Under the pieces are notes generated by a model. The model had not been told where the DNA came from, did not search any database, and saw only the letters and a list, made by a program, of their open reading frames with translations. From positions 124,001-188,000 of IMG/VR virus record IMGVR_UViG_3300024520_000047: 64,000 nucleotides of DNA; one strand, written 5' to 3'. The position numbers and the translations under genes are program-made. Shown piece after piece: positions 29,954-63,175 of this stretch. The stretch's first letter is position 1. Each line of letters begins with the position of its first letter.

Positions 29954-32900
29954 TTATACATTCTCGAAAGATGCTCCCGTTGGTGTTATTAGGAATTCAA
30001 TATCAATGAATTCAAGGGACCTTGTAGGTTTAATATAAATCTTACCCTCTAATGTGTTCTGGTCAATTAATTGTGGGTCATCAGAAACAACAACTCTAAA
30101 GTCAGTTAATCCTCGTTCTCTTCTAATCGAATCTAATATTGGGTTTACCAAGTCTAAGAATTCGTTTCTAACTTGTTCATCGTTTTGTTCAAACAATAAT
30201 TTAACTGCCACAGCCGAAATAAGTTTTCTAGCTTGTAATAACAATCTTCTAACATTAATTCGGTCAAGTGCGGATTGTCTACTTTGTAGTGTTTTATTAC
30301 CCCAGATAATAGTACCTACGTCTGAATATGTAGCAATTGGATTAATTCTACCTTGATAAAGAGTGTCCCTTTCATCTAAAGTTAATTTCTTTCTAGCTTT
30401 AACCGCGTTTACAATACCTCTAGTATATCCAGCAGATGCAAACCAAGGGAATGAAATATTATCAGTTAATGCGATATTTCTCATAACGTCATATGTTGCT
30501 GGTAACCACACCCTTGTATTATTTTCTTGGTCATTATACTGAACCCAAGGATAATAAGTGGCGGTATAGTTAGAGTCTATTCCAGTAATATCTAAATTAT
30601 CTACCGCTTCAGTAGCTTGGATAATATTAGTAGGGTCTGTCGGGGTTGATACAAATAAATTGTAATCTGGTGTTGTTGTAATATACAACGAATCCGCTCT
30701 TTCACTTTCAATCATATCTATAGTTTCCTCTACTAGGTTACTATTAGTAGTATAATCAATACCGGGAGTCGCGAATACATTTATGTTAACCGCTTCAGGG
30801 TTTCTAAATGTTCTTATACCAAAGTAATAAGAATAATAATCTGTAGTTGCAAAATAACCAGACTCACCCCAAGGTGTTTCACTTAATAATTTAAACGAAC
30901 CATCTCCAGAGGCGTTAGGGAATTGTGTGGAAACACAAGCTCCATTTAAAAATCCTGATTTACCTCTAATATATTGGTCACTATTACTTCTGTATTTTCT
31001 GTAAATATCCCAACCATCGAAACCACCATATGGTGCTAATGTAAATTTCCTAGCTTGAATTTTGTAGTATGGGTCATTCATTGCTGTTGGTTCACTACGG
31101 AAAGCTGCGGCTCCAACCTCGAACTGATTTTCAGTTGCCGTTGTTCCAGTTGGTCCACAATTTTTACATAATGTTGTAATACATAATTCACCCAGTGTGT
31201 TTGAACACGTAGCCCCACTATCTAAGTGGAATCCTGGTGTTATACAACTCCAGTCATCACCATCTAAATCAGAACAAGTGTTAGTGGCGGGTTGTTTTCC
31301 TTTGTATTGGAAGAAGTCATCATCATAAGCTGAAGGTTCACTGTCTGAAAGACCTAAATAAACTCTTCTTATTTTATCACCAGAACTAGTTGTTGTATTA
31401 TCAGCAGATGAACTTAAAGCGAATGGTGGGTTCCATATTGTCTCACCTGGTGTGTTATATGCTGTTTTATAATAAACTGTTGGACTTTGTTGTGCCCCAT
31501 ATTGTCTAGTTGTGTAACCCTCAAAACCACAAGGTACAGCATCATATCTGTTAACATCGAGTTCTTGTTCTGGGTCCACATCTACCATGATGTATTTACT
31601 TCTTAATTCATATTCACCATTAGCTGTCCCAACCTTTACACCAACGTAAGAATTATTGTTAAGGTCCATACTACATCTAGTGAATTTCTCTAACACTGTA
31701 GGTGAAGCGTCTGTGTCGTAATAATCTCTAACTAAAATATCAAATTCTTTTCTTTCAAAACTAATGTTGATGATTGAAATTTTAACTGCCGTATTAGCTG
31801 CATTTCCATCAGCTATGGATATACACCTAAATAATTTATAAACTTTATTACCACGTAACTCAGATACTAAGTATGGGGTAGCTGGTGTTTGCCATTGTTC
31901 CTGATAAAAAGCAATGGTGTTTGTATTTGGTGTTGCTCTATATGCTGGTAAATCAATTAAATTACAATTAAGTCCTTTAATGTACCCTTTATTATAAGCA
32001 TATGTTAACATATTTGGGTACGATTCCTCTACGAATACGGGAACCTTCTCCATATCTTTATCAAATGGTTGTATTCCAAATACTCGTTTTAAATAATTTC
32101 TATTAGTTGGTGACATTGAGGTTTCAAACCTAAACATGTCCCCATCTATATCTGTTACATCAATTCCAAAAGTTGCAAATGGATTTGTAGCTATATCACC
32201 AAAAGTACTTCCCGTACACACCATTGAAACATCAGTAGCTCCAGTGACTTGATACACTGGACCACCAGAAGATAGTGTACTTTCACCCCTAGACCTTAAT
32301 GTTGCAACTACTAAATCATCATAATTACAATAGGTTTGTCCTGTAAATAAAGTATACGAAAAATCTGTAAGACCAGAATACAATGTGGTGTCCGCACTTG
32401 TACTTAAATCTGTGACGTTGGTCGGATTAACACCGATACTTAAAGCAAATCCAGTATAGGAATCAGTTCCTGGTATATTATCGAAGAAAGTGTACAACCA
32501 AGGGTCGTTAAGGTCATCACAATAATCACTACATAGTGAACCTAAGCGAGCTGTTGTGGTTGCACTATATGTTGGATAATATGTTGATGTTATGACTGTT
32601 CCATTATCTTCAGCAAATGCTCCACCCGTTCCTACATAATTACATCCCCAAGAATATGCTATAGATGCTCCAGTTAATGTTTGAAAACATGGTGTTCCTC
32701 CAGTTGCACATGTAAATGGATGTGTAAATGTATTATATGCAGCTTTAAGTAAAACATCTAATTCTGCACTTAAAGTCGTAGTACTACCATCTGTTTTTTT
32801 AATGTTAGTATTTAATTTTGATAAGATTGGGCCTGGTAATGAAGAACCAGCATCTACAAATGAGGTATCACCAAAAACACTCCCACCAGAATAAACAGTA

Positions 32901-33382
32901 TCGATAGTTCCAATATTAACATTAGCTGAACTTCCCGTTGTACTTTCCCAAGTCGTTCCGGGATTACAAGTATCACCACTAAAATCAGCACTAGTTAAAG
33001 TACTCATACACTGAGTTCTTATACTATCACAATCTACATTTCCAATAGTCGTAATGGACCAAGATGGTCCCGCGTCATATCCTGAGTAACCTAATACCCT
33101 AGTTATAAATAATTGATTTGATTGTTGTAAATATGCTTTTGCAATGTATGATAATTCATATTTGGGTATTTGTGTACCTACAAATTTTTCCGGACTAAGT
33201 CCACCAAAGTAGGTTTGGTACTCACCGTATGAACTAATAAAAATAGGTTCAAAAGCAGGACCTTGTAAGGTTTCACCCGCAATACCTAATGTCGTCACAC
33301 CCACACTTTGGGCGACGAAACTTAAATCTTTCTCCGAAGTGTAAACTCCAGGTGAAACAAATACTTTAGACTCTGATGCCAT
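29954..33382 (-). CDS. Tail sheath protein (T4 gp18-like) with large Cys-rich insertions
   Basis: VSPGVYTSEKDLS, GETLQGPAFEP, YTATYYPWV, RINPIATY..VGTIIWGNKTL, LDRINVRRLLL. Confidence 0.95.
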   Translation of the reverse strand: MASESKVFVSPGVYTSEKDLSFVAQSVGVTTLGIAGETLQGPAFEPIFISSYGEYQTYFGGLSPEKFVGTQIPKYELSYIAKAYLQQSNQLFITRVLGYSGYDAGPSWSITTIGNVDCDSIRTQCMSTLTSADFSGDTCNPGTTWESTTGSSANVNIGTIDTVYSGGSVFGDTSFVDAGSSLPGPILSKLNTNIKKTDGSTTTLSAELDVLLKAAYNTFTHPFTCATGGTPCFQTLTGASIAYSWGCNYVGTGGAFAEDNGTVITSTYYPTYSATTTARLGSLCSDYCDDLNDPWLYTFFDNIPGTDSYTGFALSIGVNPTNVTDLSTSADTTLYSGLTDFSYTLFTGQTYCNYDDLVVATLRSRGESTLSSGGPVYQVTGATDVSMVCTGSTFGDIATNPFATFGIDVTDIDGDMFRFETSMSPTNRNYLKRVFGIQPFDKDMEKVPVFVEESYPNMLTYAYNKGYIKGLNCNLIDLPAYRATPNTNTIAFYQEQWQTPATPYLVSELRGNKVYKLFRCISIADGNAANTAVKISIINISFERKEFDILVRDYYDTDASPTVLEKFTRCSMDLNNNSYVGVKVGTANGEYELRSKYIMVDVDPEQELDVNRYDAVPCGFEGYTTRQYGAQQSPTVYYKTAYNTPGETIWNPPFALSSSADNTTTSSGDKIRRVYLGLSDSEPSAYDDDFFQYKGKQPATNTCSDLDGDDWSCITPGFHLDSGATCSNTLGELCITTLCKNCGPTGTTATENQFEVGAAAFRSEPTAMNDPYYKIQARKFTLAPYGGFDGWDIYRKYRSNSDQYIRGKSGFLNGACVSTQFPNASGDGSFKLLSETPWGESGYFATTDYYSYYFGIRTFRNPEAVNINVFATPGIDYTTNSNLVEETIDMIESERADSLYITTTPDYNLFVSTPTDPTNIIQATEAVDNLDITGIDSNYTATYYPWVQYNDQENNTRVWLPATYDVMRNIALTDNISFPWFASAGYTRGIVNAVKARKKLTLDERDTLYQGRINPIATYSDVGTIIWGNKTLQSRQSALDRINVRRLLLQARKLISAVAVKLLFEQNDEQVRNEFLDLVNPILDSIRRERGLTDFRVVVSDDPQLIDQNTLEGKIYIKPTRSLEFIDIEFLITPTGASFENV

Positions 33383-33521
33383 TGTTTTTAAATTTTTCTA
33401 TTGTTGTGTTATTTTATTTTTTATATAAATATAATCTCTAAACCCAAAAGATTATAGGTATTAGACCTATTATTAGGTTGTGTAGGAAAAAAAACATACT
33501 TTTTTCATACTTATATATAGT

Positions 33522-34765: not shown

Positions 34766-34767
34766 AA

Positions 34768-35347: not shown

Positions 35348-37084
35348 TTGGAAATAAAGATACCAGAAAAAGAAGCTAATAAACTTATTGGTGAATATGG
35401 CGGTGCCAATAATTTTATATTAGAATTAAAAGAAAAAATAAAAAGCAAATACTACCGATTGGGGAAATCCCAAGTAGATTATGTTTTATCACATTATACT
35501 GAAATCCCAAAAATAGCCAGAAAATATGTGGATATAGACCCTTATTTTTCAGAACAGTTACAAGAAAAACGGTTATTACCATTACAACCTAAGAAAATAT
35601 GGGTGGAAAAAATTTTAATAGAAACCCCTAAAGCTTACCACATTTGGGGTAAGATAATAGAATCAGATGACTTATATGCTTTTTGGGTACCTAAATCTCA
35701 AATAGTCCCTTCAAATACCAAAGAAATAAAAGTAGACTATTCTCCATTCAACCACCGTCCCCCTATGGAACACCAAAAACCCGCAATTGAAAATCTTTTA
35801 AAAAATGATTTATATATCCTTGCAGATGATATGGGATTGGGTAAAACAACCACCACCATTATTGCTAATATCATAGAAAAAACGGAAAAAACCCTAATAA
35901 TTTGTCCAGCCACACTAAAAATAAACTGGAAAAGAGAAATAGAAAACTACACTACAGATTCTATTAGTATAATAGAAGGAAAAATATGGGAGGATGCACA
36001 CTATGTTATAATTAATTACGATATCTTAAAAAATTTCCACAGTCTGGAAGATGAAAAAATAAGAACGATAGTAAATTCAAAATTTAAAAGGATAGTAATT
36101 GATGAAGCCCATTATATCTCTAATCCTAAAGCTCAAAGAACCAAAATAGTAAATCAAATATCAACATACGTAGGTAAGGTTTGGTTGTTAACGGGCACCC
36201 CCATGACCTCTAGACCCATCAATTATTATAACCTATTAAAATTAGTAGAAAGTAGAGTCAGTAATAATTGGGTTAGTTATGTCCGACGGTATTGTGACGC
36301 ACACCAGTTTAGAGGGCCAAATGGTAGAAAAATATGGAATGTCAACGGAGCTTCAAATTTAGAAGAATTAAGGGAAAGAACTAAGGATAAAATAACCCGT
36401 AGACTAAAAGAAGATGTTTTAGATTTACCAGATAAAATAATAACCCCAATCTATCTAGAATTAAAATCCAATGAATATGAAAAAGAAATGGGGGAATACT
36501 TGTTATGGTCAGATGAAAACCAAAATCAAAGTATCTCTATTCATTTAGCTAAACTTATGAAAGTAAGACAAATAATAGCAAATGAAAAATTAAAACATAC
36601 AAAAGAATTAATTAATGATATATTAGAACAAGATAAAAAAATTATTATTTTCACTAATTTTACAGCTCCATTAATGGAATTGGGGTCCGAATATGCCGAT
36701 ATTTCAGTTTTACTTCATGGCCAAATGTCACAAGACCAAAGGCAAAAAAGTGTAGACTCCTTCCAATCCGACCCTAAAATAAAAATTTTTATATCTAATT
36801 TAAAAGCTGGTGGTGTGGGCATCACATTAACGGAGTCGGAGGTGGTTATTATGAATGATTTAAGTTTCGTTCCTTCAGACCATTCACAAGCTGAAGATAG
36901 AGCTTTTAGGATAGGACAAAAAAATAATGTTTCGTGTATTTATCCTATTTATGAAAATACCATAGAACAAATAATTTATACTATCTTACAAAAAAAGAAA
37001 AATGTTATAGATACAGTTTTAGGAGATAATATTAATGAAGAAGATGTATTTAGTGAAATTATGAATGAATTACGTTCCAAATAA
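35348..37084 (+). CDS. SNF2-family helicase/translocase (SMARCAL1/HARP-like)
   Basis: LADDMGLGKT, IICPATLKINW, IDEAH, LTGTP, AGGVGITLT, QAEDRAFRIGQ. Confidence 0.9.
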   Translation: MEIKIPEKEANKLIGEYGGANNFILELKEKIKSKYYRLGKSQVDYVLSHYTEIPKIARKYVDIDPYFSEQLQEKRLLPLQPKKIWVEKILIETPKAYHIWGKIIESDDLYAFWVPKSQIVPSNTKEIKVDYSPFNHRPPMEHQKPAIENLLKNDLYILADDMGLGKTTTTIIANIIEKTEKTLIICPATLKINWKREIENYTTDSISIIEGKIWEDAHYVIINYDILKNFHSLEDEKIRTIVNSKFKRIVIDEAHYISNPKAQRTKIVNQISTYVGKVWLLTGTPMTSRPINYYNLLKLVESRVSNNWVSYVRRYCDAHQFRGPNGRKIWNVNGASNLEELRERTKDKITRRLKEDVLDLPDKIITPIYLELKSNEYEKEMGEYLLWSDENQNQSISIHLAKLMKVRQIIANEKLKHTKELINDILEQDKKIIIFTNFTAPLMELGSEYADISVLLHGQMSQDQRQKSVDSFQSDPKIKIFISNLKAGGVGITLTESEVVIMNDLSFVPSDHSQAEDRAFRIGQKNNVSCIYPIYENTIEQIIYTILQKKKNVIDTVLGDNINEEDVFSEIMNELRSK

Positions 37085-38240: not shown

Positions 38241-39134
38241 ATGGGATATCCGTACAATGGAAGTGGGTTAAGAACACGAATAGATTTACCACGACAAGTC
38301 TATCAAAAATGTGGTACCGAAAGTCATCTTTCTGGTGGTACAAAAATAGACCAAGGATTACAAGTAATGTTATCTGGAGCATGTGCAAGTATGAGTGCTG
38401 CAACTTACGGTTTTACTATTACAGCCACTACCGGAGATACTATGGTAATTTCTATGGGTCAGGAGGCTGATACTACAATTGGTAAATCTGGATTACAAAT
38501 AAACCCAAGTATGTTAGTGTCCTCTACTGGTACAGATTTAGAATTAAATATGTCCACTGGGGAAGTCTACACCTTTTCGTCCTCGATAAGATATAAAAAA
38601 GACGTACAAAATCTGGATTATAATGATTATAAAAACGTATTAAATCTAACCCCAGTTAAATTTAAATGGAAAAGTACTAACGAAGAATCTGTAGGGTTTA
38701 TAGCTGAAGAAGCACATCAGTTAGGTCTAGATAAATTTGTAGCTTACAATACTAATGGAGATATTGAAGGTCTTAACTATAAATTATTAACTGTAGCACT
38801 AATAGGTATTCTTAAAAATGGTGTTAGCCCTAAACTTATAACTGAAAAAGTTAGCGAATCTATAGAAGATATCCCTATACTTATAACTGAGAATTATACA
38901 ACCAACACCACTAGATATATTATAGCTAAAAAAGATTTATCCATAACATTAAATGATTCTAAACTTAAAAGATTTTATATTAAATCAATGGCAAATATTT
39001 CTGTAATACCGTCAAAAGGATTAATAGATGAAGACTGGGAAGAAATAAGTATGGGGCCACAAAGTAGCATTGAATTAATTTCTCATGAAGGTAACTGGTA
39101 TGTCTTATCTTCAGACGGTCTCAAGAACTCCTAA
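38241..39134 (+). CDS. Fibre-like protein with a peptidase S74 intramolecular chaperone domain
   Basis: SSIRYKKDV...LNLTPVKFKWK...GFIAEE...GLNYKLLTVALI. Confidence 0.75.
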   Translation: MGYPYNGSGLRTRIDLPRQVYQKCGTESHLSGGTKIDQGLQVMLSGACASMSAATYGFTITATTGDTMVISMGQEADTTIGKSGLQINPSMLVSSTGTDLELNMSTGEVYTFSSSIRYKKDVQNLDYNDYKNVLNLTPVKFKWKSTNEESVGFIAEEAHQLGLDKFVAYNTNGDIEGLNYKLLTVALIGILKNGVSPKLITEKVSESIEDIPILITENYTTNTTRYIIAKKDLSITLNDSKLKRFYIKSMANISVIPSKGLIDEDWEEISMGPQSSIELISHEGNWYVLSSDGLKNS

Positions 39135-50516: not shown

Positions 50517-50582
50517 AATTTTTTCTTTTTTTCACTGTCCAAAAAGAAGTCTCTTGTTGGTTATATCTAAATAAATATTTTG

Positions 50583-53508: not shown

Positions 53509-56028
53509 TTAAATACTTCTTACAATGGTCTTCATAACCCAGTTATTAGTGGTAGCAGAGGCAGTGAATGATGCCATTCCACCACTTAACCCAACTGAGA
53601 GTGTGACCGGAGAAGTGTTTCCGATATCTGTTGTGGAGGTTTCACTATAATTAACTGTACTACCACTCCATATTGCCATTACATTTCCTGCACGTGCACT
53701 ACCATTACCAACAATATTATAATCAAAATATGCACTTGTGTATGCACTAGTAGGTACACTATAAATCGTTGTGCTTCCAATATTTACTGTAGATTTAACA
53801 CTACTATTTAAAGCTGGAGCGTCAAAGTTACCCATTAAGACGGTATCATCTGAATTTACAGATAAAATCGGTATTCCTGAAATATCATTTACTGAAAATA
53901 ATTCACCAACTAAACTGTCATTTATAGAGAATAATTGACCTGAACTACCTAAAACATTAAAAACTGGTTGGGTATTTCCTGAGGCAGTAATCGTTAAGGG
54001 CCCATCTACATTAACATCAGGACCTATTGTAACTGGAGAACAACCAGAAATAGTAGACACCCAGAGTTCATTTATACAAGTAGCGGACGTATTTCCAGTA
54101 AAACCACCACTACCCCCACCAGCAGCTACCCAAGTTGTTCCATTATAAAATTGTAATTCATTTAGTGTGGAATCATATACAACCAACCCATCTGCAAATG
54201 TCCCAGAATTGATAGCGTCTCGTTCAACGGTTGTCATAACAGGAGGTAGAAATCCTTTTGTGGTGCTTACCATATCAATTAAAGCACTTGCATCGGGGGT
54301 TATGGTTCCAAAACCAAATGAACCTGTACTATTCCACCACGAATCCTCATCTAAACGAAATTTAAGTTCAGGGCTGTTCGCAGTAGCGATAGTCGCTAAA
54401 TATACACCAAAAGTGTCAGCTTCATCAGGAATTATATTTCCCCCAGATGAATTACGGGCGGCCAGATTAATAGAATTTGCCCCTATTGGGCGTAATTTAT
54501 TACCTATTGTAACAATACCCGCATTAAAAGTATTGTATTCTCCCGCATAATTACCTATTGAGATATTTGTTGCATAGCAATATGCAGTAGCACCTATGGC
54601 TATCCCACTTGTTCTTCCTTGCGTATTGTTTCCTATTGCAATTCCATCTGCTCCACCTCCTGCATCTGTATCAACAAGTGTATTGTTACCCAAAGCAATA
54701 GTGCCCGTTGCTTTTGCTTCGGCATTTGTTCCAATAGCAACAGAAGTGGTACTATGTGTTATTGCATCTTTTCCCAATGTAAATGCGCCATCATCTAACA
54801 TTGAAAACAAAGGGTCACTGCTACTATTTTCTAATAACAAATTTATTGTACCACTTGTATTACCTTGTCCTCTTATAGTTACAGTTCCACCAGTAAATGT
54901 TAGAGTATTTCCATCTAATTTAACTGTTCGTGCAGATGTAACTGTGCCGTCAGAATCATATAATGTGTTAACATCACCATCTAATAATATTTGTCTTGTG
55001 GAAGCACTTAATCCTGCTGCCCAATAACCGTTTGTTTCTTCCCACAATATACAAGCTGTTGTCCCCGAACCTCTTAATATTTCTAAACCACTATCGATAG
55101 GAAATGGTACAGTGTTTCCTGTAGCGTTAGCGTTTAATGTTATAATATTATCGTCTATTGTAAGTGTTTGGGTATTAATAGTTGTAGCTGTACCTAATAT
55201 ATTAACATTTCCCACAACTAACACATCTCCATTTACAGTTGCACTTGAATTGAATGTTGTGGTGGGGATAATGGTTAAATCAGTACCCAAAATTCGTGTG
55301 CTATCACCACCATTACCTAACGCTATTGCACTGTTCCCAGAATCCCAATCCAAACCTAAACTACCCTCAACATAGTATTGATTACTGAAAATGTTACCAG
55401 TTCCTGCCACTGCAGTTAAATCCCCATAAACATCAACTGATTGGTTGAATACTGCGGGGGTACCTATGGTAACTGGAGAACATCCAGAAATGTTTGACAC
55501 CCACAATTCATTTATGCAACTTGCTGAAGTATTTCCTGTAAAAGGTGGGGCACCGGTGGTCCCGCTTACAACATTACCACTAGAATCTAAGCCCAAACTA
55601 AATATAGGTGTGCCACTAACTAGTGACCCAATAGTTAGTGTCTGAGCAGTTAAACCACTTAATAACACGAAGTCGTCATGGACAGTGATTGGGGAATACC
55701 CATAAAAATCACTAGCCCATATACCAGTAAAAGCACTGAGTGTTTGAGCACTTAATGAACCATTTATAGTCACATCTGAGTGAATTGTGGTTGTTCCAGA
55801 ACACCCATAAATGTTATCTACCCAAAATATATTTTGGCAATCTCCTGAAGACGCTCCCCCACCACAAGGTGGTGTACAAAAAATATCTAATAAATTAGTA
55901 CCACCACTGAATATAGACCCACTATTATAGGTATTTGCACTGAAATATACAGGACTTAAAAAAGATGTGGTTAATGGAATATCCCCACCTTCGAAATTTT
56001 GAATAATATTTTTACACTTACACGACAT
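53509..56028 (-). CDS. Tail fibre-like protein with YadA-head-like repeats
   Basis: SVAIGTNA, TIALGNNT, GIAIGNNT, GIAIGATA, NISIGNYA repeats; two copies of GNTSA.CINELWVS.ISGCSPVTIG. Confidence 0.6.
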   Translation of the reverse strand: MSCKCKNIIQNFEGGDIPLTTSFLSPVYFSANTYNSGSIFSGGTNLLDIFCTPPCGGGASSGDCQNIFWVDNIYGCSGTTTIHSDVTINGSLSAQTLSAFTGIWASDFYGYSPITVHDDFVLLSGLTAQTLTIGSLVSGTPIFSLGLDSSGNVVSGTTGAPPFTGNTSASCINELWVSNISGCSPVTIGTPAVFNQSVDVYGDLTAVAGTGNIFSNQYYVEGSLGLDWDSGNSAIALGNGGDSTRILGTDLTIIPTTTFNSSATVNGDVLVVGNVNILGTATTINTQTLTIDDNIITLNANATGNTVPFPIDSGLEILRGSGTTACILWEETNGYWAAGLSASTRQILLDGDVNTLYDSDGTVTSARTVKLDGNTLTFTGGTVTIRGQGNTSGTINLLLENSSSDPLFSMLDDGAFTLGKDAITHSTTSVAIGTNAEAKATGTIALGNNTLVDTDAGGGADGIAIGNNTQGRTSGIAIGATAYCYATNISIGNYAGEYNTFNAGIVTIGNKLRPIGANSINLAARNSSGGNIIPDEADTFGVYLATIATANSPELKFRLDEDSWWNSTGSFGFGTITPDASALIDMVSTTKGFLPPVMTTVERDAINSGTFADGLVVYDSTLNELQFYNGTTWVAAGGGSGGFTGNTSATCINELWVSTISGCSPVTIGPDVNVDGPLTITASGNTQPVFNVLGSSGQLFSINDSLVGELFSVNDISGIPILSVNSDDTVLMGNFDAPALNSSVKSTVNIGSTTIYSVPTSAYTSAYFDYNIVGNGSARAGNVMAIWSGSTVNYSETSTTDIGNTSPVTLSVGLSGGMASFTASATTNNWVMKTIVRSI

Positions 56029-56054
56029 AAATCACTTTATAAGTAAATATCTTT

Positions 56055-59000
56055 TTACCTATATAAATTTCCAATTAAAGTTACCTTGCTATTTTTATTT
56101 GTGTTTATCTTTATAATTTTAACATATATCACATCATCAGGTAACGCATTAAACGGGGTGGTCACAATTTCTGGTACACCTAAACCATTGTCTGGATATT
56201 TTGTTATAACATAACTACTTACATTTTCACTTACTGTGGATATAAATTTAACACCAACATAAGGTGGTGTAGTCACATATTGATTTAATTCATTAACAGC
56301 GACCTCATCCATATTTGGTGTGGTATAGTTAAGTATTAAATCTAAAGACTCACATTCTAATACATATAATACCGGACATGGGTCACACACAGTACAATCT
56401 TTAATACAGTCAATTAAATCATATCTAAATTTATTAACTAAAAAATTATGAAAAATTTCATCATTACCTAACGGCTTAATGTATTGTCTTATTTGAGATA
56501 TTCCACCATCGTAAGTTCCAGCAAAATATCGTTCAATTAATAAACCTAAATCTGTGGGGTCTTGCTGATAGGGGGGACATATTTCAATTGTTGTTCCGCT
56601 ACTAGTAAATGTTAAGTTTTCATAAAGTCCTTGTGAACCACCACCCCAAGATATGTTATATGGTACTGCTACTTGTTTTTGTGGTTCAGTATTTAATCGT
56701 CTTGGAATTATTTCTTCAAAATCATCATCAACCAAGACTGGTCTACCATTTACAAAAATTGTCAGTGTTCCTTTTCTATACCCTATTTCATCAGACCATA
56801 ATTTACTAAATCTAATTTTCTCTGTTAACTTGGTGTAATCAGAAGTGCAACCACTTGGTGGTGGACATCCAGCAGACACACAAAGACCTGTAGGTATCCC
56901 CTCACCAGTATATTGACCCGTGACGCCAACTTTATTGCCTTGGTCATTAAACCCAGGCATTAATGGGGCTTCTCTTACTAAAGACGATGTAGCGTTTCCT
57001 ATTCCAGAATCTATGTATCCTACAGTATCTGTAACAGGAATATAAACCAAATCGTTAAAACCACCCCTATTTAATATATCACAACCCTCATAACAAAAAT
57101 TTCTTCTAAATCTTGCACTTATCAAAACCCAAGGTTCTTCGGCTCTATAAGTTGCTCCACTTAAACCACATATTGTTGGGCTATATTTTTCCACCACAGT
57201 AAATCCTGAACTATAAGTTAAACCTGTAACACACTCATCTTTAGTGTAGGTAACATTGTTATCACAATCTATAATTTTTTTATGTGAATATGTGGTTATA
57301 CAATCACCAGTATAATAGATGGCACGGTACCCAACAGTATACCCAGTTTGAGCTTCATTATTCCATGGAGTTAAACGTAGCCCAAACGAATTACTAAGAA
57401 CATCTAATTTTGAATCATAAGTACTTTTTATAGTTTTAGGTTGGGGGGGACACCCCACATATGTGGTTGCGGATGTTATTAATGGTACAGAAGGGCCTTC
57501 ACAACTATAATCTTTTTGGTCACATGTTTGTAAATAGGTTTCAGCAGAATAGTAATTATGGAATTTATTTTCTGCTCGTGTACCTAAATAATAGAAAAAT
57601 CCAGCATTATTTGGGTAGATATCATTTAATGTGTTATGTAATACTGGATAATATAATGTAATATCTGTGGTTCCTGTAGCCCCCAATATAAATTCAGTGG
57701 TAGAATACGTAAACCCACTAGGTACTATAGTAGTAATATCATCATAATCTAAATTCCATGGGTTGCCGTGGTCATCGAGATTTGATGTTAAATTAAACCC
57801 AAAATCAACTGGTTGTTGTAAACTAAAACTAGATGCTCCGTAAGGTACTGAAAGTGAAGCTGTTACAGTACCTAAGGGATTTTGTTCTAACAATATATCT
57901 GTAAAAGTTTTCTTTTCATAAAATAACACACATCCTGTGGTGGTCCCGCTAGGGATAACCACACGTCCACTATTATATCTAAATTGATTATCATTAACTA
58001 TTTCAGTAATAACCGCAAAATCTTCTGGATATAAATCTGTATTAAAATCAGAATTTAAAGAATTAGTTACAGTTACAATATTACCCACTTCTTGACCGTG
58101 ATTAGGATAATTAACTAACACAACACCTGATGGTGAAGCGATAGACATTGAGACACCACAAGTAATAAAATGAGTATCACATGCGGTATCACCAGTTCGT
58201 ATTTTTAATAATGTTTCTACAGTCCATCCACATTCTGGCCTATTGGGTAAAACTTTATAGGGGTAACCATCTAATTGGTAAAATCCTTGATAAAAACCAC
58301 CATAAAGTTGTTGGTAATACCCTTCAGTTCCTCCAGTTACACTCACAATACTATAGTTGGTACGGTGTTGAGTATAACCAGTAATTTGTTTCATTTTAAA
58401 TCTTCTATCATAATGGAGATGGTCATATTTATATTGGTCAGGCATCTCAACCCATAACTTTAAACTCTCTACTTGACAAGGAACCTTCAAATACCCTACA
58501 TTAGTTGTAGTATGTGCTGTAAAGATACCCAAATTAACACTACTTCCTGATTGAATTATTTTTGCTTTACTAAGAGTTACTGTGTAAGCGCTACTACCTG
58601 TAAAAACACAACATCCAGAATATTGTAAATTATTCTTTATAATTTCAAAATTATTAGTAATTGAAGTCCCTGTTGATGTTAATCCTGATACATTACATGG
58701 ATATAAGAATTGAAAAGCTGTTTCGGTTGAGACCTCTGTTGGTGTTGTGGGGCTCCATGTAGCACCACTAAAATAACAAATTCCTGAGGTAGGTGTGGTA
58801 GTTCCTGTGACTGTTCCAGTAATGGCAGTTAAGGAAATGAATTCTCTCAGACACCAATCATACTCGGTGGTATTACCACTCATATATTTAACAAGGGAGT
58901 TATCTATGCCTGTCAGTCCTACATCACAAATAGATTCTACAAAATTAGTATTTGCGGTGTAAACACTATTTTCACATTTAGGGCATGAACATTTAGCGTT

Positions 59001-59324
59001 GCTAATTGTGGGTGTGTGGTTTTCCCAATATGATAAACTTAATAACGTATTATTATCATAATATTGATTACATGATAGATTAGGTTGCCAAGTACTATTA
59101 GTATCATTTAAGTCAATCCAAAAACCTAAACAGTTAGACGAAAATGTTATTCCACTCAAATAATCATCTAAGTGGTCCCACACACATATAATGTATGGGG
59201 AATAAATTACTTCCTTATTATAGTCTTTTTCATCCGCCGCTAAAAAGAAATCGTAGTAGCTACTATAATCCAATCTTGCGTCTAATTTATTGAAATAATA
59301 GTTATTTAAATTTTGTGGTCCCAT
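56055..59324 (-). CDS. Large Cys/Thr-rich virion protein with a LamG-like C-terminal part
   Basis: GTLTIFVNG...ISWGGGSQGL...FAGTYDGGISQIRQY; about 35 Cys. Confidence 0.55.
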   Translation of the reverse strand: MGPQNLNNYYFNKLDARLDYSSYYDFFLAADEKDYNKEVIYSPYIICVWDHLDDYLSGITFSSNCLGFWIDLNDTNSTWQPNLSCNQYYDNNTLLSLSYWENHTPTISNAKCSCPKCENSVYTANTNFVESICDVGLTGIDNSLVKYMSGNTTEYDWCLREFISLTAITGTVTGTTTPTSGICYFSGATWSPTTPTEVSTETAFQFLYPCNVSGLTSTGTSITNNFEIIKNNLQYSGCCVFTGSSAYTVTLSKAKIIQSGSSVNLGIFTAHTTTNVGYLKVPCQVESLKLWVEMPDQYKYDHLHYDRRFKMKQITGYTQHRTNYSIVSVTGGTEGYYQQLYGGFYQGFYQLDGYPYKVLPNRPECGWTVETLLKIRTGDTACDTHFITCGVSMSIASPSGVVLVNYPNHGQEVGNIVTVTNSLNSDFNTDLYPEDFAVITEIVNDNQFRYNSGRVVIPSGTTTGCVLFYEKKTFTDILLEQNPLGTVTASLSVPYGASSFSLQQPVDFGFNLTSNLDDHGNPWNLDYDDITTIVPSGFTYSTTEFILGATGTTDITLYYPVLHNTLNDIYPNNAGFFYYLGTRAENKFHNYYSAETYLQTCDQKDYSCEGPSVPLITSATTYVGCPPQPKTIKSTYDSKLDVLSNSFGLRLTPWNNEAQTGYTVGYRAIYYTGDCITTYSHKKIIDCDNNVTYTKDECVTGLTYSSGFTVVEKYSPTICGLSGATYRAEEPWVLISARFRRNFCYEGCDILNRGGFNDLVYIPVTDTVGYIDSGIGNATSSLVREAPLMPGFNDQGNKVGVTGQYTGEGIPTGLCVSAGCPPPSGCTSDYTKLTEKIRFSKLWSDEIGYRKGTLTIFVNGRPVLVDDDFEEIIPRRLNTEPQKQVAVPYNISWGGGSQGLYENLTFTSSGTTIEICPPYQQDPTDLGLLIERYFAGTYDGGISQIRQYIKPLGNDEIFHNFLVNKFRYDLIDCIKDCTVCDPCPVLYVLECESLDLILNYTTPNMDEVAVNELNQYVTTPPYVGVKFISTVSENVSSYVITKYPDNGLGVPEIVTTPFNALPDDVIYVKIIKINTNKNSKVTLIGNLYR

Positions 59325-59374
59325 TTAAGATAAATATTTACTATCTATTTAATATTTATAGTAAAAACAAATAG

Positions 59375-60049
59375 ATGAAAGAATTAACACATGATGGTAC
59401 TTGTAATAGGGTTCATCCCGATATTTCTCACGAAAAATGGGAAGAAAAAGAACAAAAAAAAGAAGAAACTAATGAAGAACAAGAATTAGATGAACTTGTT
59501 GATTATGATGGTTCACTATTAAGTTCTAAAATTCCTCTAGGGATTAATAAGACGAATAAAATAAGTAGAAGTACTTCAGATGATGTTGTTAAAACCGCAC
59601 ACCAAAAAGGTAATGGTTTGGGGTATTACTATAAGCGTTACTGGGGGGAATCATATCTGGGTGGTGGATTAAGTGATGTTGAGGATATAGACACCATGTC
59701 AGCAGATGAAACAATTGACCATTTTGAAGATGAGTACGGATTAAGTCCATTAAGGGCACACGAAAAAGCGTCAGAATATGGTAAAATTGTAAATGGTAGT
59801 GAAGAAGATTTGCATGATGAGAAACAACGGATTGTAGAATTAGGTAATAATAAAATGAAAGATATGTTAGAAATATTATTAAGTAAGGACGCTAAAAATA
59901 CAGAACGTGGGTTGGTAGACACGGATAAGCCTATAGAATTACACGATGAGAATAACGATAATCCCATACTAACTAAAATGGGTACTAAATTTAAACAAGC
60001 TTGTGATGCTCACGGAATTAATCCACAAGACATATTAAAAAATATATAA
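59375..60049 (+). CDS. Hypothetical acidic protein, probably head-associated
   Basis: Preceded by TATTTATA (59353-59360); no recognised domain. Confidence 0.55.
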   Translation: MKELTHDGTCNRVHPDISHEKWEEKEQKKEETNEEQELDELVDYDGSLLSSKIPLGINKTNKISRSTSDDVVKTAHQKGNGLGYYYKRYWGESYLGGGLSDVEDIDTMSADETIDHFEDEYGLSPLRAHEKASEYGKIVNGSEEDLHDEKQRIVELGNNKMKDMLEILLSKDAKNTERGLVDTDKPIELHDENNDNPILTKMGTKFKQACDAHGINPQDILKNI

Positions 60050-60502
60050 ATGCCAGATAAAAATTTATATGATAGAACATTTGAGGTTCCTGATAAATGC
60101 ATTGAACATATAAAAAATGCATTTACAAATTTTAATGGTCCAAAAACAACAGAAGGGTATGAACGTGCAAAAAATATTTTAAAAAATCCAAATATTAGTT
60201 TACCCCTATTAAAAAAAATAAATAACTTTTTTAGAAATGAAGAAGAAGGGACTGCACCATATAATTTAACTGGTGGTGATTACGGTAAAAAAATATTTCA
60301 AAAAATGGAGGACCAAGTACGTAGAGGTGAGTCTTCTTCACGTAAAAATAAAATGAGAGGTGGTATGATGAATACCCACTATAAAGAACATGAAAAGGAC
60401 CAAAATGCTAACCCTACGGGTGTAAATGTCCCAAAAGTAGATAGCGTCCCCGCATTAATCGAACAAATAAAGAAAATTAAAAAACTTATAAACTATTTAT
60501 AA
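60050..60502 (+). CDS. Hypothetical protein, probably head-associated
   Basis: RAKNILKNPNISLPLLKKINNFF...GG segment; C-terminal LIEQIKKIKKLI motif. Confidence 0.5.
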   Translation: MPDKNLYDRTFEVPDKCIEHIKNAFTNFNGPKTTEGYERAKNILKNPNISLPLLKKINNFFRNEEEGTAPYNLTGGDYGKKIFQKMEDQVRRGESSSRKNKMRGGMMNTHYKEHEKDQNANPTGVNVPKVDSVPALIEQIKKIKKLINYL

Positions 60503-60512
60503 AAAAAAAGTT

Positions 60513-60836
60513 ATGGCACAAGAACAACAAACAAATCCAGGTGAAAAAATGACAGAAGTTGCAAAAGCAGAAAGAGATAAGCTATTTCCAAAAAACGAGT
60601 ATAGCCCAAAATCAGAATTTTATAGTCCCCAACACCCCAACGCTTTAGCGGATGGTGACGATAAAGGAAGAGGTACTAGCGTATATTTAGGGGTACACGA
60701 CACTAAAACCGGTACAAAACTAGATATTCTTACGAGAGATGATTTAGTAAAAACTAACGCTTACAACTCTAAAAATAACTATTCTGTTCCTGACGATGAG
60801 GCTACAACAGGTACTGTTGGATTAACACCTTCTTAA
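60513..60836 (+). CDS. Hypothetical protein
   Basis: Preceded by TATTTATA (60494-60501). Confidence 0.6.
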   Translation: MAQEQQTNPGEKMTEVAKAERDKLFPKNEYSPKSEFYSPQHPNALADGDDKGRGTSVYLGVHDTKTGTKLDILTRDDLVKTNAYNSKNNYSVPDDEATTGTVGLTPS

Positions 60837-60851
60837 TAAAGTTTTAAGAAA

Positions 60852-61214
60852 ATGAAACTTTACAACACCCTACATTCACTTATATTAGAAGTAGCTTCTA
60901 GGGAAGACACCAAACAAGCTATTGAAAATAAATTAAGGACACTTATTTATTATGAAGGTGATACCGTTAATAACCCAGGGTGGAGAACAATCGAACCAGT
61001 TTGTGCTGGGACAACAAAAAGAAATAATCCAGTTCTTAGAGCATGGCAAACAGAGGGGGCTACAGATACCGAAGTTCCTGGTTGGAAATTTTTTAGATTG
61101 GATAGGATTAGAAATTGGCAACCGACACTGGATGAGTTTACTGAAGCCCGTCCTGGTTACAACCCAAACGGCGATAAAAGTATGAATCAAGTGTGGTTCA
61201 ACGCAAAATTTTAA
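60852..61214 (+). CDS. Stand-alone WYL-like domain protein
   Basis: IYYEG...WRTIEPVCAG...VLRAWQ...WKFFRLDRI. Confidence 0.75.
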   Translation: MKLYNTLHSLILEVASREDTKQAIENKLRTLIYYEGDTVNNPGWRTIEPVCAGTTKRNNPVLRAWQTEGATDTEVPGWKFFRLDRIRNWQPTLDEFTEARPGYNPNGDKSMNQVWFNAKF

Positions 61215-61223
61215 TAAAAAGAA

Positions 61224-61844
61224 ATGGATAAACTACAACAATCTTTATTAAACGCTAAAAGATTTATGGAGCACGATGCATTAAAAAGTGCCTCCCGAAC
61301 AGCATCAACACCACGGACACAAGAACCTGAAATGGGTGAACCAATTATGGCTCACCAAGTACCAAATATGAATATAAATGAAAGTAGTATTCCGTCAGCG
61401 GCACCAGAAATGACAATGGCACCGAAATCAAAAATGACTAAAGAATCTATTTTAAATTCCAAATTGCCCGACGCGATAAAACAAGCAATGTTAAGTAATC
61501 CAATACCTGACCCTATCCCAGATAACGCCTTATCACCCCAATTCATAAATGAAGTTAGTAAAAAAATGAATTCACAAGACTACAGTATAAGTAATATGAG
61601 AGCAACGGCTAATTCAAACGTTAAAAAAGAAATCGTTGACCCCATACCGTCATTAATTCCAGACCCACCACCTACCCCAGATTCAAGTTCTTTAAAAGAA
61701 ACAATTAAAGAATGTTTAAAGGAAATTTTAGAAGAAGAAAATTTAATCGTTGAATCTAAAAATCTAAAAGAAAATTTACAATTACGAGTAGGAAACAAAG
61801 TATTTACAGGAACTATTAAAAATGTAAAAACAATAAAAAAATAA
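61224..61844 (+). CDS. Hypothetical Pro/Ser-rich protein
   Basis: 206-aa ORF; C-terminal LKEILEEENLIVES...LRVGNKVFTG. Confidence 0.55.
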   Translation: MDKLQQSLLNAKRFMEHDALKSASRTASTPRTQEPEMGEPIMAHQVPNMNINESSIPSAAPEMTMAPKSKMTKESILNSKLPDAIKQAMLSNPIPDPIPDNALSPQFINEVSKKMNSQDYSISNMRATANSNVKKEIVDPIPSLIPDPPPTPDSSSLKETIKECLKEILEEENLIVESKNLKENLQLRVGNKVFTGTIKNVKTIKK

Positions 61845-61868
61845 AATACGTTTAAATTTTGTGTTTTT

Positions 61869-61893
61869 ATGGGGACTATTGGTCCCCATTTTT
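61869..61893 (+). terminator. Intrinsic terminator
   Basis: atggggac-tattg-gtccccat followed by tttt. Confidence 0.75.
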
Positions 61894-61895
61894 GT

Positions 61896-61924
61896 TTGAC
61901 AATTTCTTTAATTATGGTTATGTT
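61896..61924 (+). promoter_or_regulatory. Promoter of the glycosyltransferase operon
   Basis: TTGACA-N17-TATGTT(TC). Confidence 0.7.
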
Positions 61925-61951
61925 TCAATGTAACAAAATTAATTTAATAGA

Positions 61952-63175
61952 ATGTCAAAATACAAAATTTTAGTTCTTCCCAGTGACAGAACAGGTGTAT
62001 CCAAATTTAGGTCTGTAGACCCACACGTATGTTTACAAAAATTATATCCAGACGAATTTTGGGTCGATATAGATTATGAACCTAAACTTAATGACGAAAA
62101 TTATTTAAAAAAATATGATTTAATACATTACCATAGGTCATTACACGCCGATTATAAATTATCACAAAAAACTATACCACTATTAAATAAATTAGGGATA
62201 CCACATATTATGGATGTGGATGATTACTGGTTACCCAATATTGAACATCCCGCGTATATGTTAGTAAAAGGTAATGGTATGGACCAACTTATAATGGATA
62301 ACCTCAAATTAGCACAATATGTTACTACTACAACCCCTCTTTTTGCTAAGGAAATAAAAAGATTATGCTCTAATGTACATGTATTGCCCAACGCTATTGA
62401 CCCAAAAGAAAAACAATTTACAGCTAACCCTACAAAAAGTGACCGAATTAGGATTGGGTGGTTGGGGGGTTCTTCACATTTAGCAGACCTTCGTATATTA
62501 GAAGGTGTCGTAGATAAATTACTTCATTTTAAAGATAAAATACAGTTTGTTTTATGTGGTTTTGACACTAGGGGGACTATTACCGAATTTAACCAACAAA
62601 CCAAACAACAAAAACAAAGACCCATTAAACCCAAAGAGTCGGTATGGTTTGAATATGAAAAAATATTTACAGGAAATTATAAATTGGTTGGTGATGAACA
62701 GAAAAAACAATTAATGCAATTTAAATTTGGTGAAGAGTATAAAAATTCTGACACACCTTACCGTAGAGTGTGGACTAAACCCATCACCACATATGCCGAA
62801 AACTATAATAAATTTGATATAAGTTTAGCACCATTAAAACACCATAAATTTAATGAGGTCAAATCTCAATTAAAGGTCATTGAATCTGGATTCCATAAAA
62901 AAGCACTTATCGCACAGAATTTTGGCCCATATCAAATAGACTGTATAAACGCTTATGAACGAGGAGGCACATTTAATAAATCAGGGAACGCTATACTAAT
63001 TGATGAAACTAAAAATCATAAACATTGGTTCCAACAACTTAAAAGACTTATTGAAAATCCAACATTAATTAAGGATTTAGGCGAAAATTTATATGAGACA
63101 GTCCAAAAATATCATATAGAAAATGTAACTAAAGAAAGAGCTCAAATTTATAGAGACATAATAAATAAACACTAA
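61952..63175 (+). CDS. GT-B fold glycosyltransferase (GT4-like)
   Basis: MDVDDYW, VTTTT..FA, VHVLPNAID, RIGWLGGSSH..DL, DISLAPL...FNEVKSQLKVIE. Confidence 0.85.
   Translation: MSKYKILVLPSDRTGVSKFRSVDPHVCLQKLYPDEFWVDIDYEPKLNDENYLKKYDLIHYHRSLHADYKLSQKTIPLLNKLGIPHIMDVDDYWLPNIEHPAYMLVKGNGMDQLIMDNLKLAQYVTTTTPLFAKEIKRLCSNVHVLPNAIDPKEKQFTANPTKSDRIRIGWLGGSSHLADLRILEGVVDKLLHFKDKIQFVLCGFDTRGTITEFNQQTKQQKQRPIKPKESVWFEYEKIFTGNYKLVGDEQKKQLMQFKFGEEYKNSDTPYRRVWTKPITTYAENYNKFDISLAPLKHHKFNEVKSQLKVIESGFHKKALIAQNFGPYQIDCINAYERGGTFNKSGNAILIDETKNHKHWFQQLKRLIENPTLIKDLGENLYETVQKYHIENVTKERAQIYRDIINKH

Follow-up and report, generated by a model that had tools for sequence, protein, structure and literature searches.

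The window analysed here, a 64,000-nucleotide stretch of DNA from an uncultured marine jumbo phage of a T4-like lineage, carries a group of tail, baseplate and fibre genes that lies next to a phage-encoded gene cluster for building sugars. The features that bear on this work are as follows.

10924-25095: three giant ORFs.
26140-26769: a Mom-like ORF.
29954-33382 (-): tail sheath of 1142 aa with large insertions, identified by Pfam and PHROG hits.
35348-37084: helicase.
38241-39134 (+): 297-aa protein with a Peptidase_S74 intramolecular-chaperone domain, typical of fibres and spikes.
39111-41831: PolB.
42312-44096 (-): 594-aa fibre-like protein sharing the 'ELWVSxISGCSPVTIG' module with the 839-aa fibre (43% identity over 100 aa).
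49443-53507 (-): five small ORFs of the baseplate/fibre region, three of them with Laminin_G_3 domains.
53509-56028 (-): 839-aa mosaic fibre with a YadA-head/PTL_trimer-like module at aa 383-640.
56055-59324 (-): 1089-aa fibre or distal-baseplate protein without Pfam, PHROG or PDB hits; from its sequence we infer a split ConA/LamG-like core carrying large insertions.
59375-61844 (+): five small ORFs of unknown function, always found between the fibre gene and the glycosyltransferase (GT) gene in relatives.
61952-63175 (+): 407-aa predicted GT-B, GT4-like (group 1) glycosyltransferase, the conserved first gene of the glycan cluster and the candidate initiating transferase.
63419-64000 (+): start of a 3'-5' exonuclease-like ORF that runs off the window.

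The initial annotation proposed that a (S/T)-(G/A)-x-T motif saturates the virion proteins of this phage, is absent from PolB and the helicase, and marks sites for a phage-encoded glycosylation system that includes the GT-B enzyme. The underlying observation is confirmed, with counts that reproduce exactly or nearly. The 1089-aa ORF holds 23 matches against 2.4 expected, the 839-aa ORF 20 (about 19 had been counted) against 5.1, the sheath 10 against 3.6 and the ORF at 38241-39134 4, all within aa 31-67, while PolB and the helicase have 0 each. Shuffling within 20- or 40-aa blocks preserves the excess in the two large fibre ORFs (z 10.7-11.8 for the 1089-aa ORF and 6.6-7.3 for the 839-aa ORF), so local composition does not explain it. 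The signal is directional and specific for Thr at position 4, since the reversed motif, [ST][GA]xS, shifted spacings and [^ST][GA]xT are not enriched. Ser, Gly and Thr codons vary between copies, indicating that it resides at the protein level.

The description of virion proteins as saturated is nevertheless too broad. The sheath signal is weak (z about 3) and over the whole protein the reversed motif is equally enriched; all 10 copies lie in insertions (aa 135-393 and 722-748), with 0 in the conserved sheath core. The gp23-like major capsid protein has 4 copies against 1.6 expected (z 1.9), the three giant ORFs 8 against 7.3, and three LamG-domain ORFs 8 against 5.2. Two further enriched sets had been missed: the 594-aa ORF, with 8 copies against about 2 expected (z 3.8-4.6), and the five small ORFs at 49443-53507, which pooled hold 11 against 3.5 (z 4.2; 0 of 500 shuffles reached the observed count). 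Within the 839-aa fibre, 15 copies fall in aa 1-382, 5 in aa 641-839 and none in aa 383-640. This motif-free middle module, recently shared, is 71% identical to P0402, a protein from a contig whose ORFs are not motif-enriched. Enrichment is a property of fibres and their neighbours rather than of virion proteins in general.

The motif is a family trait. Of 120 homologues 96% have z>4 (median z 9.2), as do 84% of 132 distant representatives (median z 8.25), while the reversed-motif control is flat; by contrast, T4 and Phapecoctavirus fibres are not enriched. Non-homologous neighbouring fibre ORFs also carry it, and it appears in lineage-specific insertions and in different repeat types, including 12-aa repeats, roughly 27-aa repeats and irregular spacing. 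Across 73 homologues of the 1089-aa protein 11 motif columns are conserved, with S/T and G/A swaps and a free x; in conserved columns S and T interchange, G greatly exceeds A, and position 4 is T 569 times against S 39. Flanking positions carry at most 0.31 bit, and at x Pro occurs once in 1244 contexts against 65 expected and Arg 3 times against 38. The Bacteroidota sequon is a different one, since D[ST][AILVMT] is not enriched in these fibres and D is not favoured at position -1.

The motif does not look essential to the fold. One homologue, P0270, keeps every core block but has replaced or deleted all motif copies (for example, TGLTysSGYT becomes STETfyDENY); motif-free relatives form the P0270 and P0372/L044/P0371 clades. 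In an AF2 model of the 1089-aa protein, read for secondary structure only, the copies are placed in long strands, in loops and at strand ends.

The GT-B assignment at 61952-63175 is confirmed by structure prediction and not by Pfam, which returned no hit at E 0.01. The protein matches PHROG 7162 (E 2e-39), its AF2 model has a mean pLDDT of 88.9, and Foldseek finds GlgM, MshA, PglA, BshA and SdgB at 1e-14 to 1e-10 as well as viral group-1 GTs. It has at least 7998 homologues, most from marine metagenomes. The gene opens a cluster of which about 17 kb follows on the source contig just beyond the window, as read from the contig stretches L006, L021 and L024 (L006 coordinate = window coordinate - 51951). 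These encode a dUTPase-like protein, dTDP-glucose 4,6-dehydratase, tandem GT2, a Glyco_transf_7C-like GT, a GT10-like GT, two more GT2, DUF268, two methyltransferases, two sulfotransferase-like proteins and two GDP_Man_Dehyd/Epimerase-family enzymes, with about six GTs in the cluster. No membrane segment is predicted in any of the cluster ORFs, and no flippase, polymerase or polyprenyl-phosphate transferase family was detected among them, which fits direct glycosylation of a soluble acceptor. The GT-B enzyme and glycan genes lie 2.5-9 kb from the fibre gene in about 35 distinct related loci, and the cluster's content varies between relatives.

Whether motif and GT occur together was also examined in relatives, although only one GT-less neighbourhood, that of the sister locus L043, could be fully assessed. 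At L043, where PolB is 42% and the sheath 39% identical to those of the window, there is no homologue of the 407-aa GT within 10 kb on either side, and the five small ORFs found elsewhere between fibre gene and GT are absent. Its fibre homologue has 2 copies of the motif and its sheath 1, the latter aligning only from residue 355 of the window sheath onward (791 aa). That genome may, however, carry GTs elsewhere, and because GT and motif co-occur almost everywhere their linkage may simply reflect conserved gene order. Conversely, P0247 sits next to a GT cluster yet shows no enrichment (8 copies against 5.6 expected).

We suggest, tentatively, that the motif is a recognition sequence, hydroxyl-small-x-Thr with x almost never Pro or Arg, kept by selection on the presumably exposed fibre and distal-tail proteins of this lineage. 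In this model its most likely reader is the phage's own glycosylation pathway, whose enzymes, having no predicted membrane segments, are probably cytoplasmic. The conserved GT-B/GT4-like enzyme would place the first sugar on a Ser/Thr of the motif in newly made fibre proteins. The variable downstream enzymes (GT2, GT10/GT11-type, GT8/GT25-type, sugar-nucleotide dehydratases/epimerases, methyltransferases and sulfotransferases) would then build a lineage-specific glycan containing deoxyhexose or fucose, possibly methylated and sulfated. The motif statistics, the conservation of the motif, the GT fold, the content of the cluster and its synteny are shown by the analysis, whereas it is inferred that the acceptor is protein, that any residue is modified and which, and what each enzyme does. 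There is no chemical evidence of modification, and the GT4-like fold does not reveal the acceptor: its best structural neighbours act on small molecules, lipid-linked sugars and glucans, the protein O-GT SdgB being one hit among many. The cluster also sits among nucleotide-metabolism genes (exonuclease, dUTPase) and on the strand opposite to the fibre genes. The interpretation offered in the initial annotation is thus partly supported: the motif is a real, ordered signal of fibre and distal-tail proteins absent from replication proteins, and the genetic case is stronger than had been recognised, but a sequon for fibre O-glycosylation, although the best single reading, is unproven.

A serious rival, only somewhat less likely, is that hydrophobic-(S/T)-(G/A)-x-T is a lineage-specific packing, strand-register or assembly element of beta-rich, probably trimeric, fibres, with no modification and with the adjacent glycan cluster serving something else. 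Position -1 is hydrophobic and +4 is often I/Y/L, and we infer that hydrophobic -1, G/A at +1 and Thr at +3 would lie on one face of a beta-strand, as in a packing motif. G and Thr are near-invariant at conserved columns, Thr rather than Ser at position 4 fits beta-strand propensity, and 7 of the confidently modelled copies lie inside long beta-strands, where access for an enzyme is uncertain. In some relatives the motif is the conserved core of regular repeats (12-aa 'lnv-TGxT-nlqn' and roughly 27-aa 'vTGGTy...FTNNsGGTFxvtG'), and its absence from the YadA-like beta-roll module would be expected if it belongs to particular folds. However, spacing in the 1089-aa ORF is irregular, predicted structural contexts are mixed, flanking positions carry almost no information, and acceptance of Ala at position 2 argues, by inference, against a positive-phi turn requirement. 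The recurrence of the motif in unrelated sequence families and fresh insertions, its loss from P0270 with the core blocks retained, and its lack in T4 and Phapecoctavirus fibres also count against a purely structural role.

It is less likely, though possible, that the cluster modifies phage DNA, giving glycosylated hydroxymethyl-pyrimidines, or remodels host envelope glycans, and that the fibre motif is unrelated, for example a ligand-binding or chaperone-recognition element or the target of another modification. Phage GT-A and GT-B enzymes hypermodify 5hmC DNA with mono- to trisaccharides, sometimes next to structural genes (Pyle et al., bioRxiv 10.1101/2023.12.21.572611). The 407-aa GT is followed directly by an exonuclease and a dUTPase/dCTP-deaminase-like gene in all relatives examined, a 'DNA alpha-glucosyltransferase' appears at rank 27 (5.5e-9) among its viral structural neighbours, and the Mom-like ORF lies in the window. 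Against this, no thymidylate-synthase-type hydroxymethylase or 5mYOX/TET family was detected in the roughly 90 kb examined (the window plus L021/L024) of the 245.9-kb contig; intact DNA-hypermodification pathways are reported commonly to cluster with such enzymes, although about 65% of the GT contigs in that study had none nearby. Sugar O-methyltransferases, sulfotransferases and fucosyltransferase-like GTs point, by inference, to an elaborate glycan not known on DNA, and host-envelope remodelling would normally need membrane steps, for which the cluster ORFs have no predicted membrane segment. This reading also leaves the motif itself unexplained.

Among related systems, phage DNA glucosylation and glycan hypermodification (T4 alpha/beta-GT; Pyle et al.) likewise use phage-encoded GT-B or GT-A enzymes, sometimes with epimerases and secondary GTs, located among replication genes, but here sulfo- and methyltransferases are present, no ThyS or 5mYOX partner was detected in about 90 kb, and the fibre motif has no counterpart in that system. 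Bacteroidota general O-glycosylation likewise uses a short, three-residue sequon, D-(S/T)-(A/I/L/V/M/T), on many surface proteins, but is periplasmic and lipid-linked, whereas the phage cluster has no predicted membrane proteins. In mycobacteriophage virion glycosylation (Che8-type; Freeman et al. 2023, Cell Host Microbe 31:1216, as cited in PMC12619734 and PMC10877033), phage-encoded GTs located near structural genes are proposed or shown to decorate the phage's own virion proteins. There, glycans sit at the C-termini of the capsid and tail-tube subunits (PMC12619734), and no short internal sequon is mentioned in the text read. In the present phage the capsid is not enriched, the candidate targets are fibres with 20 or more internal sites, the gene set is far larger and includes sulfotransferase-like genes, and the host and phage lineage are unrelated.

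Giant viruses (chlorovirus, mimivirus) carry their own sugar-nucleotide synthesis, several soluble GTs and methyltransferases, and their glycans decorate surface fibres or capsid. Mimivirid group-1 GTs are among the structural neighbours of the 407-aa GT, and by language-model features the proteins most like the 839-aa fibre are giant-virus hypothetical proteins (score 0.93). Those viruses have eukaryotic hosts and a different virion architecture, chlorovirus glycans are N-linked at atypical sites, and no shared sequon is known. Finally, soluble GT-B enzymes hyperglycosylate beta-rich bacterial adhesins in the cytoplasm: HMW1C/NGT at N-x-S/T, TibC/AAH heptosyltransferases on AIDA-I/TibA repeats, and SdgA/SdgB on SD repeats. 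In those systems the substrate is an elongated, repeat-rich surface adhesin with tens of short acceptor motifs, the GT and substrate genes are linked, and further GTs extend the first sugar. The phage system resembles them in outline, although transfer to protein has been not demonstrated but inferred here, and differs in having an O-linked (S/T)-(G/A)-x-T candidate motif rather than N-x-S/T or SD dipeptides, in being viral rather than bacterial, and in a predicted glycan that is much more elaborate.

The 245,874-bp contig from which the window (bases 124001-188000) is taken, IMGVR_UViG_3300024520_000047 (JGI Ga0255047_10000002), has about 33% G+C and a T4-like gene content. This includes gp25, gp32, a UvsX/RecA-like protein, a DnaB-like helicase, RNase H, ribonucleotide reductase, PolB, gp13 and a tail sheath, with a gp23-type capsid protein and a prohead protease just downstream of the window. 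There is no cultured relative, since megablast and tblastn of the fibre against GenBank phages returned no match and PolB is at best 25% identical to that of Salinibacter phages. No accession in the main text of the paper describing 'moraphages' (PMC12619734) matched, and identity with that group was not confirmed. Among the replication genes lies a phage-encoded FKBP-type peptidyl-prolyl isomerase (7279-7713, minus strand; PF00254, 2e-25).

A regular-expression count of (S/T)-(G/A)-x-T over 46 ORFs reproduced the numbers of the initial annotation, and its observation therefore holds. The features concerned are as follows.

56055-59324, minus strand: 1089-aa fibre ORF, 23 copies against 2.4 expected
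53509-56028, minus strand: 839-aa fibre ORF, 20 copies against 5.1 expected
Tail sheath: 10 copies
38241-39134: ORF with 4 copies within its first 67 residues
PolB and helicase: 0 copies each
49443-53507: five small baseplate-region ORFs, pooled, 11 copies against 3.5 expected (z 4.2)
Three LamG-domain ORFs, pooled: 8 copies against 5.2 expected
10924-25095: three giant ORFs, pooled, 8 copies against 7.3 expected
gp23-like capsid protein: 4 copies against 1.6 expected (z 1.9)
29 remaining ORFs, non-structural, pooled: 3 copies against 6.4 expected

The counts in the two large fibre ORFs are far above chance (z 7-14), and shuffling within 20- or 40-residue blocks, which removes any effect of local composition, still gives z of about 11 and about 7, respectively. 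Low complexity and local composition are thus rejected as explanations. The signal is directional and specific, because T-x-[GA]-[ST], [ST][GA]xS, [ST]x[GA]T, [ST][GA]xxT and [ST][ST]xT are all flat and [^ST][GA]xT tends to fall below expectation. A DNA-level cause is likewise rejected, because the Ser, Gly/Ala and Thr codons differ from copy to copy. The ten sheath copies all lie in its insertions, the conserved sheath core has none, and over the whole sheath the reversed motif is as frequent as the forward one. The giant ORFs include a 2176-aa ORF (10924-17454, minus strand) with an amidase/endolysin-like domain at about aa 1910-2025, which may be a virion-associated lysin or tape-measure-like protein and is not motif-enriched. 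The initial annotation had described the motif as saturating virion proteins, but it marks fibres and their immediate neighbours, not virion proteins in general. The depletion in the 29 non-structural ORFs is weak and not significant, although it is in the direction that would be expected if off-target sequons were avoided. Counts of the T4-type late promoter TATAAATA are at chance, although one correctly oriented site (59353-59360, minus strand) lies 29 bp upstream of the start of the 1089-aa ORF.

The motif is a property of a large protein family and of its neighbours. Among 120 homologues of the 1089-aa ORF, reaching down to about 30% identity, the median z is 9.2 and 96% exceed 4, while among 132 representatives of at least 300 aa found by a full HMMER profile search the median z is 8.25 and 84% exceed 4; in neither set does the reversed-motif control ever exceed 4. 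An alignment of 73 sequences has eleven conserved motif columns, in which, when pooled, position 1 is T 361 / S 239, position 2 is G 489 / A 98, position 3 is free and position 4 is T 569 / S 39. New copies appear in lineage-specific insertions, for example three TGCT within one insert. The ORFs next to the fibre gene in related contigs are mostly not homologous to one another, yet they are also enriched (z 5-14) and carry the motif in different frameworks, namely 12-residue repeats of the type 'lnv-TGxT-nlqn', roughly 27-residue repeats of the type 'vTGGTy...FTNNsGGTFxvtG', and irregular spacing. A general property of phage fibres was rejected for T4 gp34-37 and for the tail proteins of a Phapecoctavirus, neither of which is enriched. 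It should be noted that Phapecoctavirus also carries distant homologues (about 25% identity) of the glycosyltransferase considered below, so presence of that family at this distance does not predict the motif.

In 1244 distinct 20-residue contexts no flanking position carries more than 0.31 bit, with position -1 favouring M/V/F/L and the residue after the motif favouring I/Y. At x, Pro is strongly depleted (1 observed against 65 expected, p 1e-27), as are Arg (3 against 38) and Lys (20 against 50). Asp is not favoured at -1, and D[ST][AILVMT] is not enriched in the four main proteins (2 observed against 3.9 expected, 4 against 5.0, 2 against 2.7 and 6 against 6.4), such that the motif is not the Bacteroidota sequon, in agreement with the initial annotation. 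The proteins of the 1089-aa family are also unusually Cys-rich, with near-invariant cysteines (C112, C133, C601, C625, C675, C698, C719, C748), and Cys is about 3-fold enriched at positions -2/-3 and +8 relative to the motif; these cysteines may form disulfide or metal clusters. A conserved Cys-containing module, 'C(I/L)(N/S)ELWVSxISGCSPVTIG', occurs twice in the 839-aa fibre (aa ~170-190 and ~650-670) and once in the 594-aa protein encoded at 42312-44096 on the minus strand (aa ~108-128), each time shortly after a motif copy, and may be a shared adaptor or attachment domain.

The 407-aa ORF at 61952-63175 has no Pfam or NCBIfam hit but matches PHROG 7162 'glycosyltransferase' at 2e-39. With a 28-sequence alignment, AF2 gives a mean pLDDT of 88.9, and Foldseek against PDB returns GT-B, GT4-type retaining enzymes at 1e-14 to 1e-10, comprising GlgM, MshA, PglA, BshA, glycogen synthase and also the protein O-GlcNAc transferase SdgB; against viral models it returns 'glycosyl transferases group 1' from uncultured phages and mimivirids. 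Sequence searches of PDB with this protein and with the three fibre proteins gave nothing usable. The GT-B assignment of the initial annotation is therefore right, but the fold does not name the acceptor. The family is very large in marine metagenomes, with at least 7998 proteins passing E 0.001 among the 8000 candidates scored.

Beyond the window end, the same strand continues with a 3'-5' exonuclease-like gene, a dUTPase/dCTP-deaminase-like gene, dTDP-glucose 4,6-dehydratase (TIGR01181, 375 bits, above the curated cutoff), a 509-aa tandem GT2, a Glyco_transf_7C-like GT, a GT10-like (fucosyltransferase-type) GT, two more GT2-like genes, DUF268, two methyltransferases, one with a weak match to the rhamnosyl-O-methyltransferase/CmcI family, two sulfotransferase-like genes (PF03567, and a faint match to PF00685) and two further GDP_Man_Dehyd/Epimerase-family enzymes, which we read as possible GDP-fucose synthesis genes. 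At least five GT-family ORFs thus follow the 407-aa ORF. The sulfotransferase-like genes (11822-13058, plus strand, in L021, a stretch of the source contig beyond the window) appear to be unusual for a phage and suggest a sulfated glycan. None of the cluster ORFs has a membrane-like segment, the highest 19-residue hydropathy of the GT-B protein being 0.72, and no flippase (Wzx), polymerase (Wzy) or polyprenyl-phosphate transferase family was detected, which does not match the lipid-linked assembly and periplasmic transfer of Bacteroidota O-glycosylation. The glycan therefore appears to be built in the cytoplasm on a soluble acceptor.

Relatives keep the order fibre, five small ORFs, GT, exonuclease, dUTPase, tandem GT2, after which they vary, with a DegT aminotransferase, an RmlD-like reductase, GT8, GT11, GT25 and other methyltransferases. 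This variation resembles that of an O-antigen locus. In one relative (L020, 3941-6996) GIY-YIG/NUMOD3 homing-endonuclease genes occupy the place of the 407-aa GT, and the nearest ORF there with no Pfam hit is only 290 aa, although a blastp hit to the GT was detected in that locus. In another, L057 (IMGVR_UViG_3300040786_000030, 193 kb), homologues of the fibre, GT, PolB and gp13 all appear as short ORF fragments under genetic code 11, which may reflect stop-codon recoding or a poor assembly.

Of 43 distinct fibre homologues in the loci compiled, 35 have the GT within 2.5-9 kb (median z 7.7, minimum 2.9). Of the eight without a detected GT, seven have too little flank on the side where the GT normally lies, including the locus L044, with only 1.2 kb of upstream flank. 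The one fully assessable case is L043, a 23-kb contig whose PolB is 42% and sheath 39% identical to the window's. Within about 10 kb upstream and 9 kb downstream of its fibre homologue there is neither the GT nor any glycan-cluster gene, and its gene order differs (helicase, glutaredoxin, fibre, PolB). Its fibre homologue has 2 copies, and its sheath, which aligns only from residue 355 of the window's sheath and so lacks the N-terminal insertion, has 1. This is the pattern predicted for a sequon, but it is a single contrast, drawn from a fragment of that genome. Conversely P0247, a fibre homologue that sits beside a GT cluster, is not enriched (8 against 5.6).

Whether the motif is structural was addressed with an AF2 monomer model of the 1089-aa protein (73 sequences), whose mean pLDDT is only 67.7. 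Copies are placed inside long strands (residues 166, 173, 186, 245, 269, 700, 706), in loops (57, 149, 213, 315, 377, 660, 722, 909) and at a strand end (330), with the remaining copies in low-confidence regions (8 copies fall in such regions). There is no single turn type, nor the single fixed secondary-structure context expected of a structural fibre repeat (a beta-helix turn, or a Phage_fiber-type GGTMTG motif), and Foldseek found no significant match to the model among solved structures. Spacing is irregular and the flanks are nearly information-free in the 1089-aa family, whereas some neighbouring fibre ORFs of relatives have the regular 12-aa and roughly 27-aa repeats. More telling is the homologue P0270, which matches the family profile at E 2e-189 and keeps all conserved core blocks yet has zero copies: every motif column is substituted, for example TGLTysSGYT becomes STETfyDENY, and the motif-rich inserts are deleted. 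As to its GT status, the contig of P0270 is only 4.3 kb, its relatives among the viral contigs searched are all motif-rich with a GT, and two DNA-pattern scans of metagenomes found nothing. The clade of homologues P0372/L044/P0371 has 2, 0 and 1 copies, and the homologues P0374 and P0366 have 0 and 1.

The 839-aa fibre is a mosaic in which residues 1-382 have 15 copies (z 8.4) and residues 641-839 have 5 (z 3.7), while the middle YadA-head/PTL_trimer-like module (383-640) has none. That module is 71% identical over 255 aa to a fibre (3427-5916) on L058, an unrelated 7.5-kb contig with 38% G+C whose three large ORFs are not enriched, which looks like recent exchange of fibre modules between phage lineages. 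Together these results say that the core fold does not require the motif and that the motif tracks lineage rather than fold.

The motif is real, ordered, conserved by selection, fibre-specific and lineage-specific, and it sits beside a large, variable glycan pathway whose enzymes have no predicted membrane segments and whose first enzyme is a predicted GT-B. The most economical single reading is a sequon for phage-encoded O-glycosylation of the fibres, although we hold it only tentatively, as rather less likely than not. A purely structural motif is also doubtful but not far behind. The findings above do not exclude a packing role, since hydrophobic -1, G/A at +1 and Thr at +3 would, we infer, share one face of a beta-strand, and in some relatives the motif is the core of regular repeats. 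It is less likely, though possible, that the cluster serves DNA or something else and that the motif is unrelated to it. Phage GTs can hypermodify 5hmC with up to trisaccharides, and some such clusters sit near structural genes; intact pathways are reported commonly to cluster with a ThyS-type hydroxymethylase or a 5mYOX/TET enzyme, although about 65% of the GT contigs in that study had neither nearby (bioRxiv 10.1101/2023.12.21.572611). Neither enzyme was detected in the window or in L021 and L024, its continuation, which together cover about 90 kb of the 245.9-kb contig and leave about 156 kb outside the search. The exonuclease and dUTPase genes that always follow the GT keep this rival alive, as does a 209-aa ORF (26140-26769, plus strand) that matches PHROG 1384 'Mom-like DNA modification protein' (3e-38) and also HNH/homing-endonuclease PHROGs. 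By inference, the methyl-, sulfo- and fucosyl-transferase-like genes argue for a more elaborate glycan than any known on DNA.

The interpretation offered by the initial annotation, that the motif marks sites of phage-encoded virion glycosylation, is thus supported in part. What the analysis demonstrates is the motif, its family-wide conservation, the modelled fold of the GT, the content of the cluster and its linkage to the fibre gene; that the GT transfers sugar to the motif residue, and that glycans are covalently attached to virion proteins, is inferred, and nothing here shows a sugar on a protein. Literature searches found no prior report of this motif or of glycosylated fibres in such phages. 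Should the tentative reading prove correct, an abundant, uncultured marine lineage of T4-like large and jumbo phages would carry a self-contained, probably cytoplasmic O-glycosylation system that reads (S/T)-(G/A)-x-T, with x not Pro or Arg, and coats the tail fibres with lineage-variable glycans that may be fucosylated, methylated and sulfated. This would be the first defined glycosylation sequon in any phage. Receptor-binding fibres in a widespread ocean lineage would then be glycoproteins whose sugar coat is encoded by the virus and diversifies like an O-antigen locus, with a bearing on host recognition, on resistance to proteases and grazing, on stickiness to marine particles and mucus, and on how fibre sequences are read, and the system would supply a short portable tag and a soluble transferase for glyco-engineering. 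If the motif is instead purely structural, it is still an unreported, family-wide building rule for a new class of fibre folds.

In the sequon reading the system would work like the cytoplasmic, sequon-directed adhesin glycosylation of bacteria (NGT/HMW1C, TibC/AAH and SdgB type), with which it shares a predicted GT-B transferase without a predicted membrane segment, a candidate substrate carrying many copies of a short motif far above chance, and genetic linkage between the two. It would also work like the self-glycosylation of giant viruses. Phage-encoded glycosylation of virion proteins is itself already reported for mycobacteriophages (Che8-type; cited in PMC12619734 and PMC10877033), and the present phage likewise encodes predicted glycosyltransferases. 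In the Che8-type system, however, the targets are the C-termini of the capsid and tail-tube subunits, whereas here, judged by the motif alone, the gp23-like capsid protein is not enriched and the candidate sites are concentrated in the fibres.
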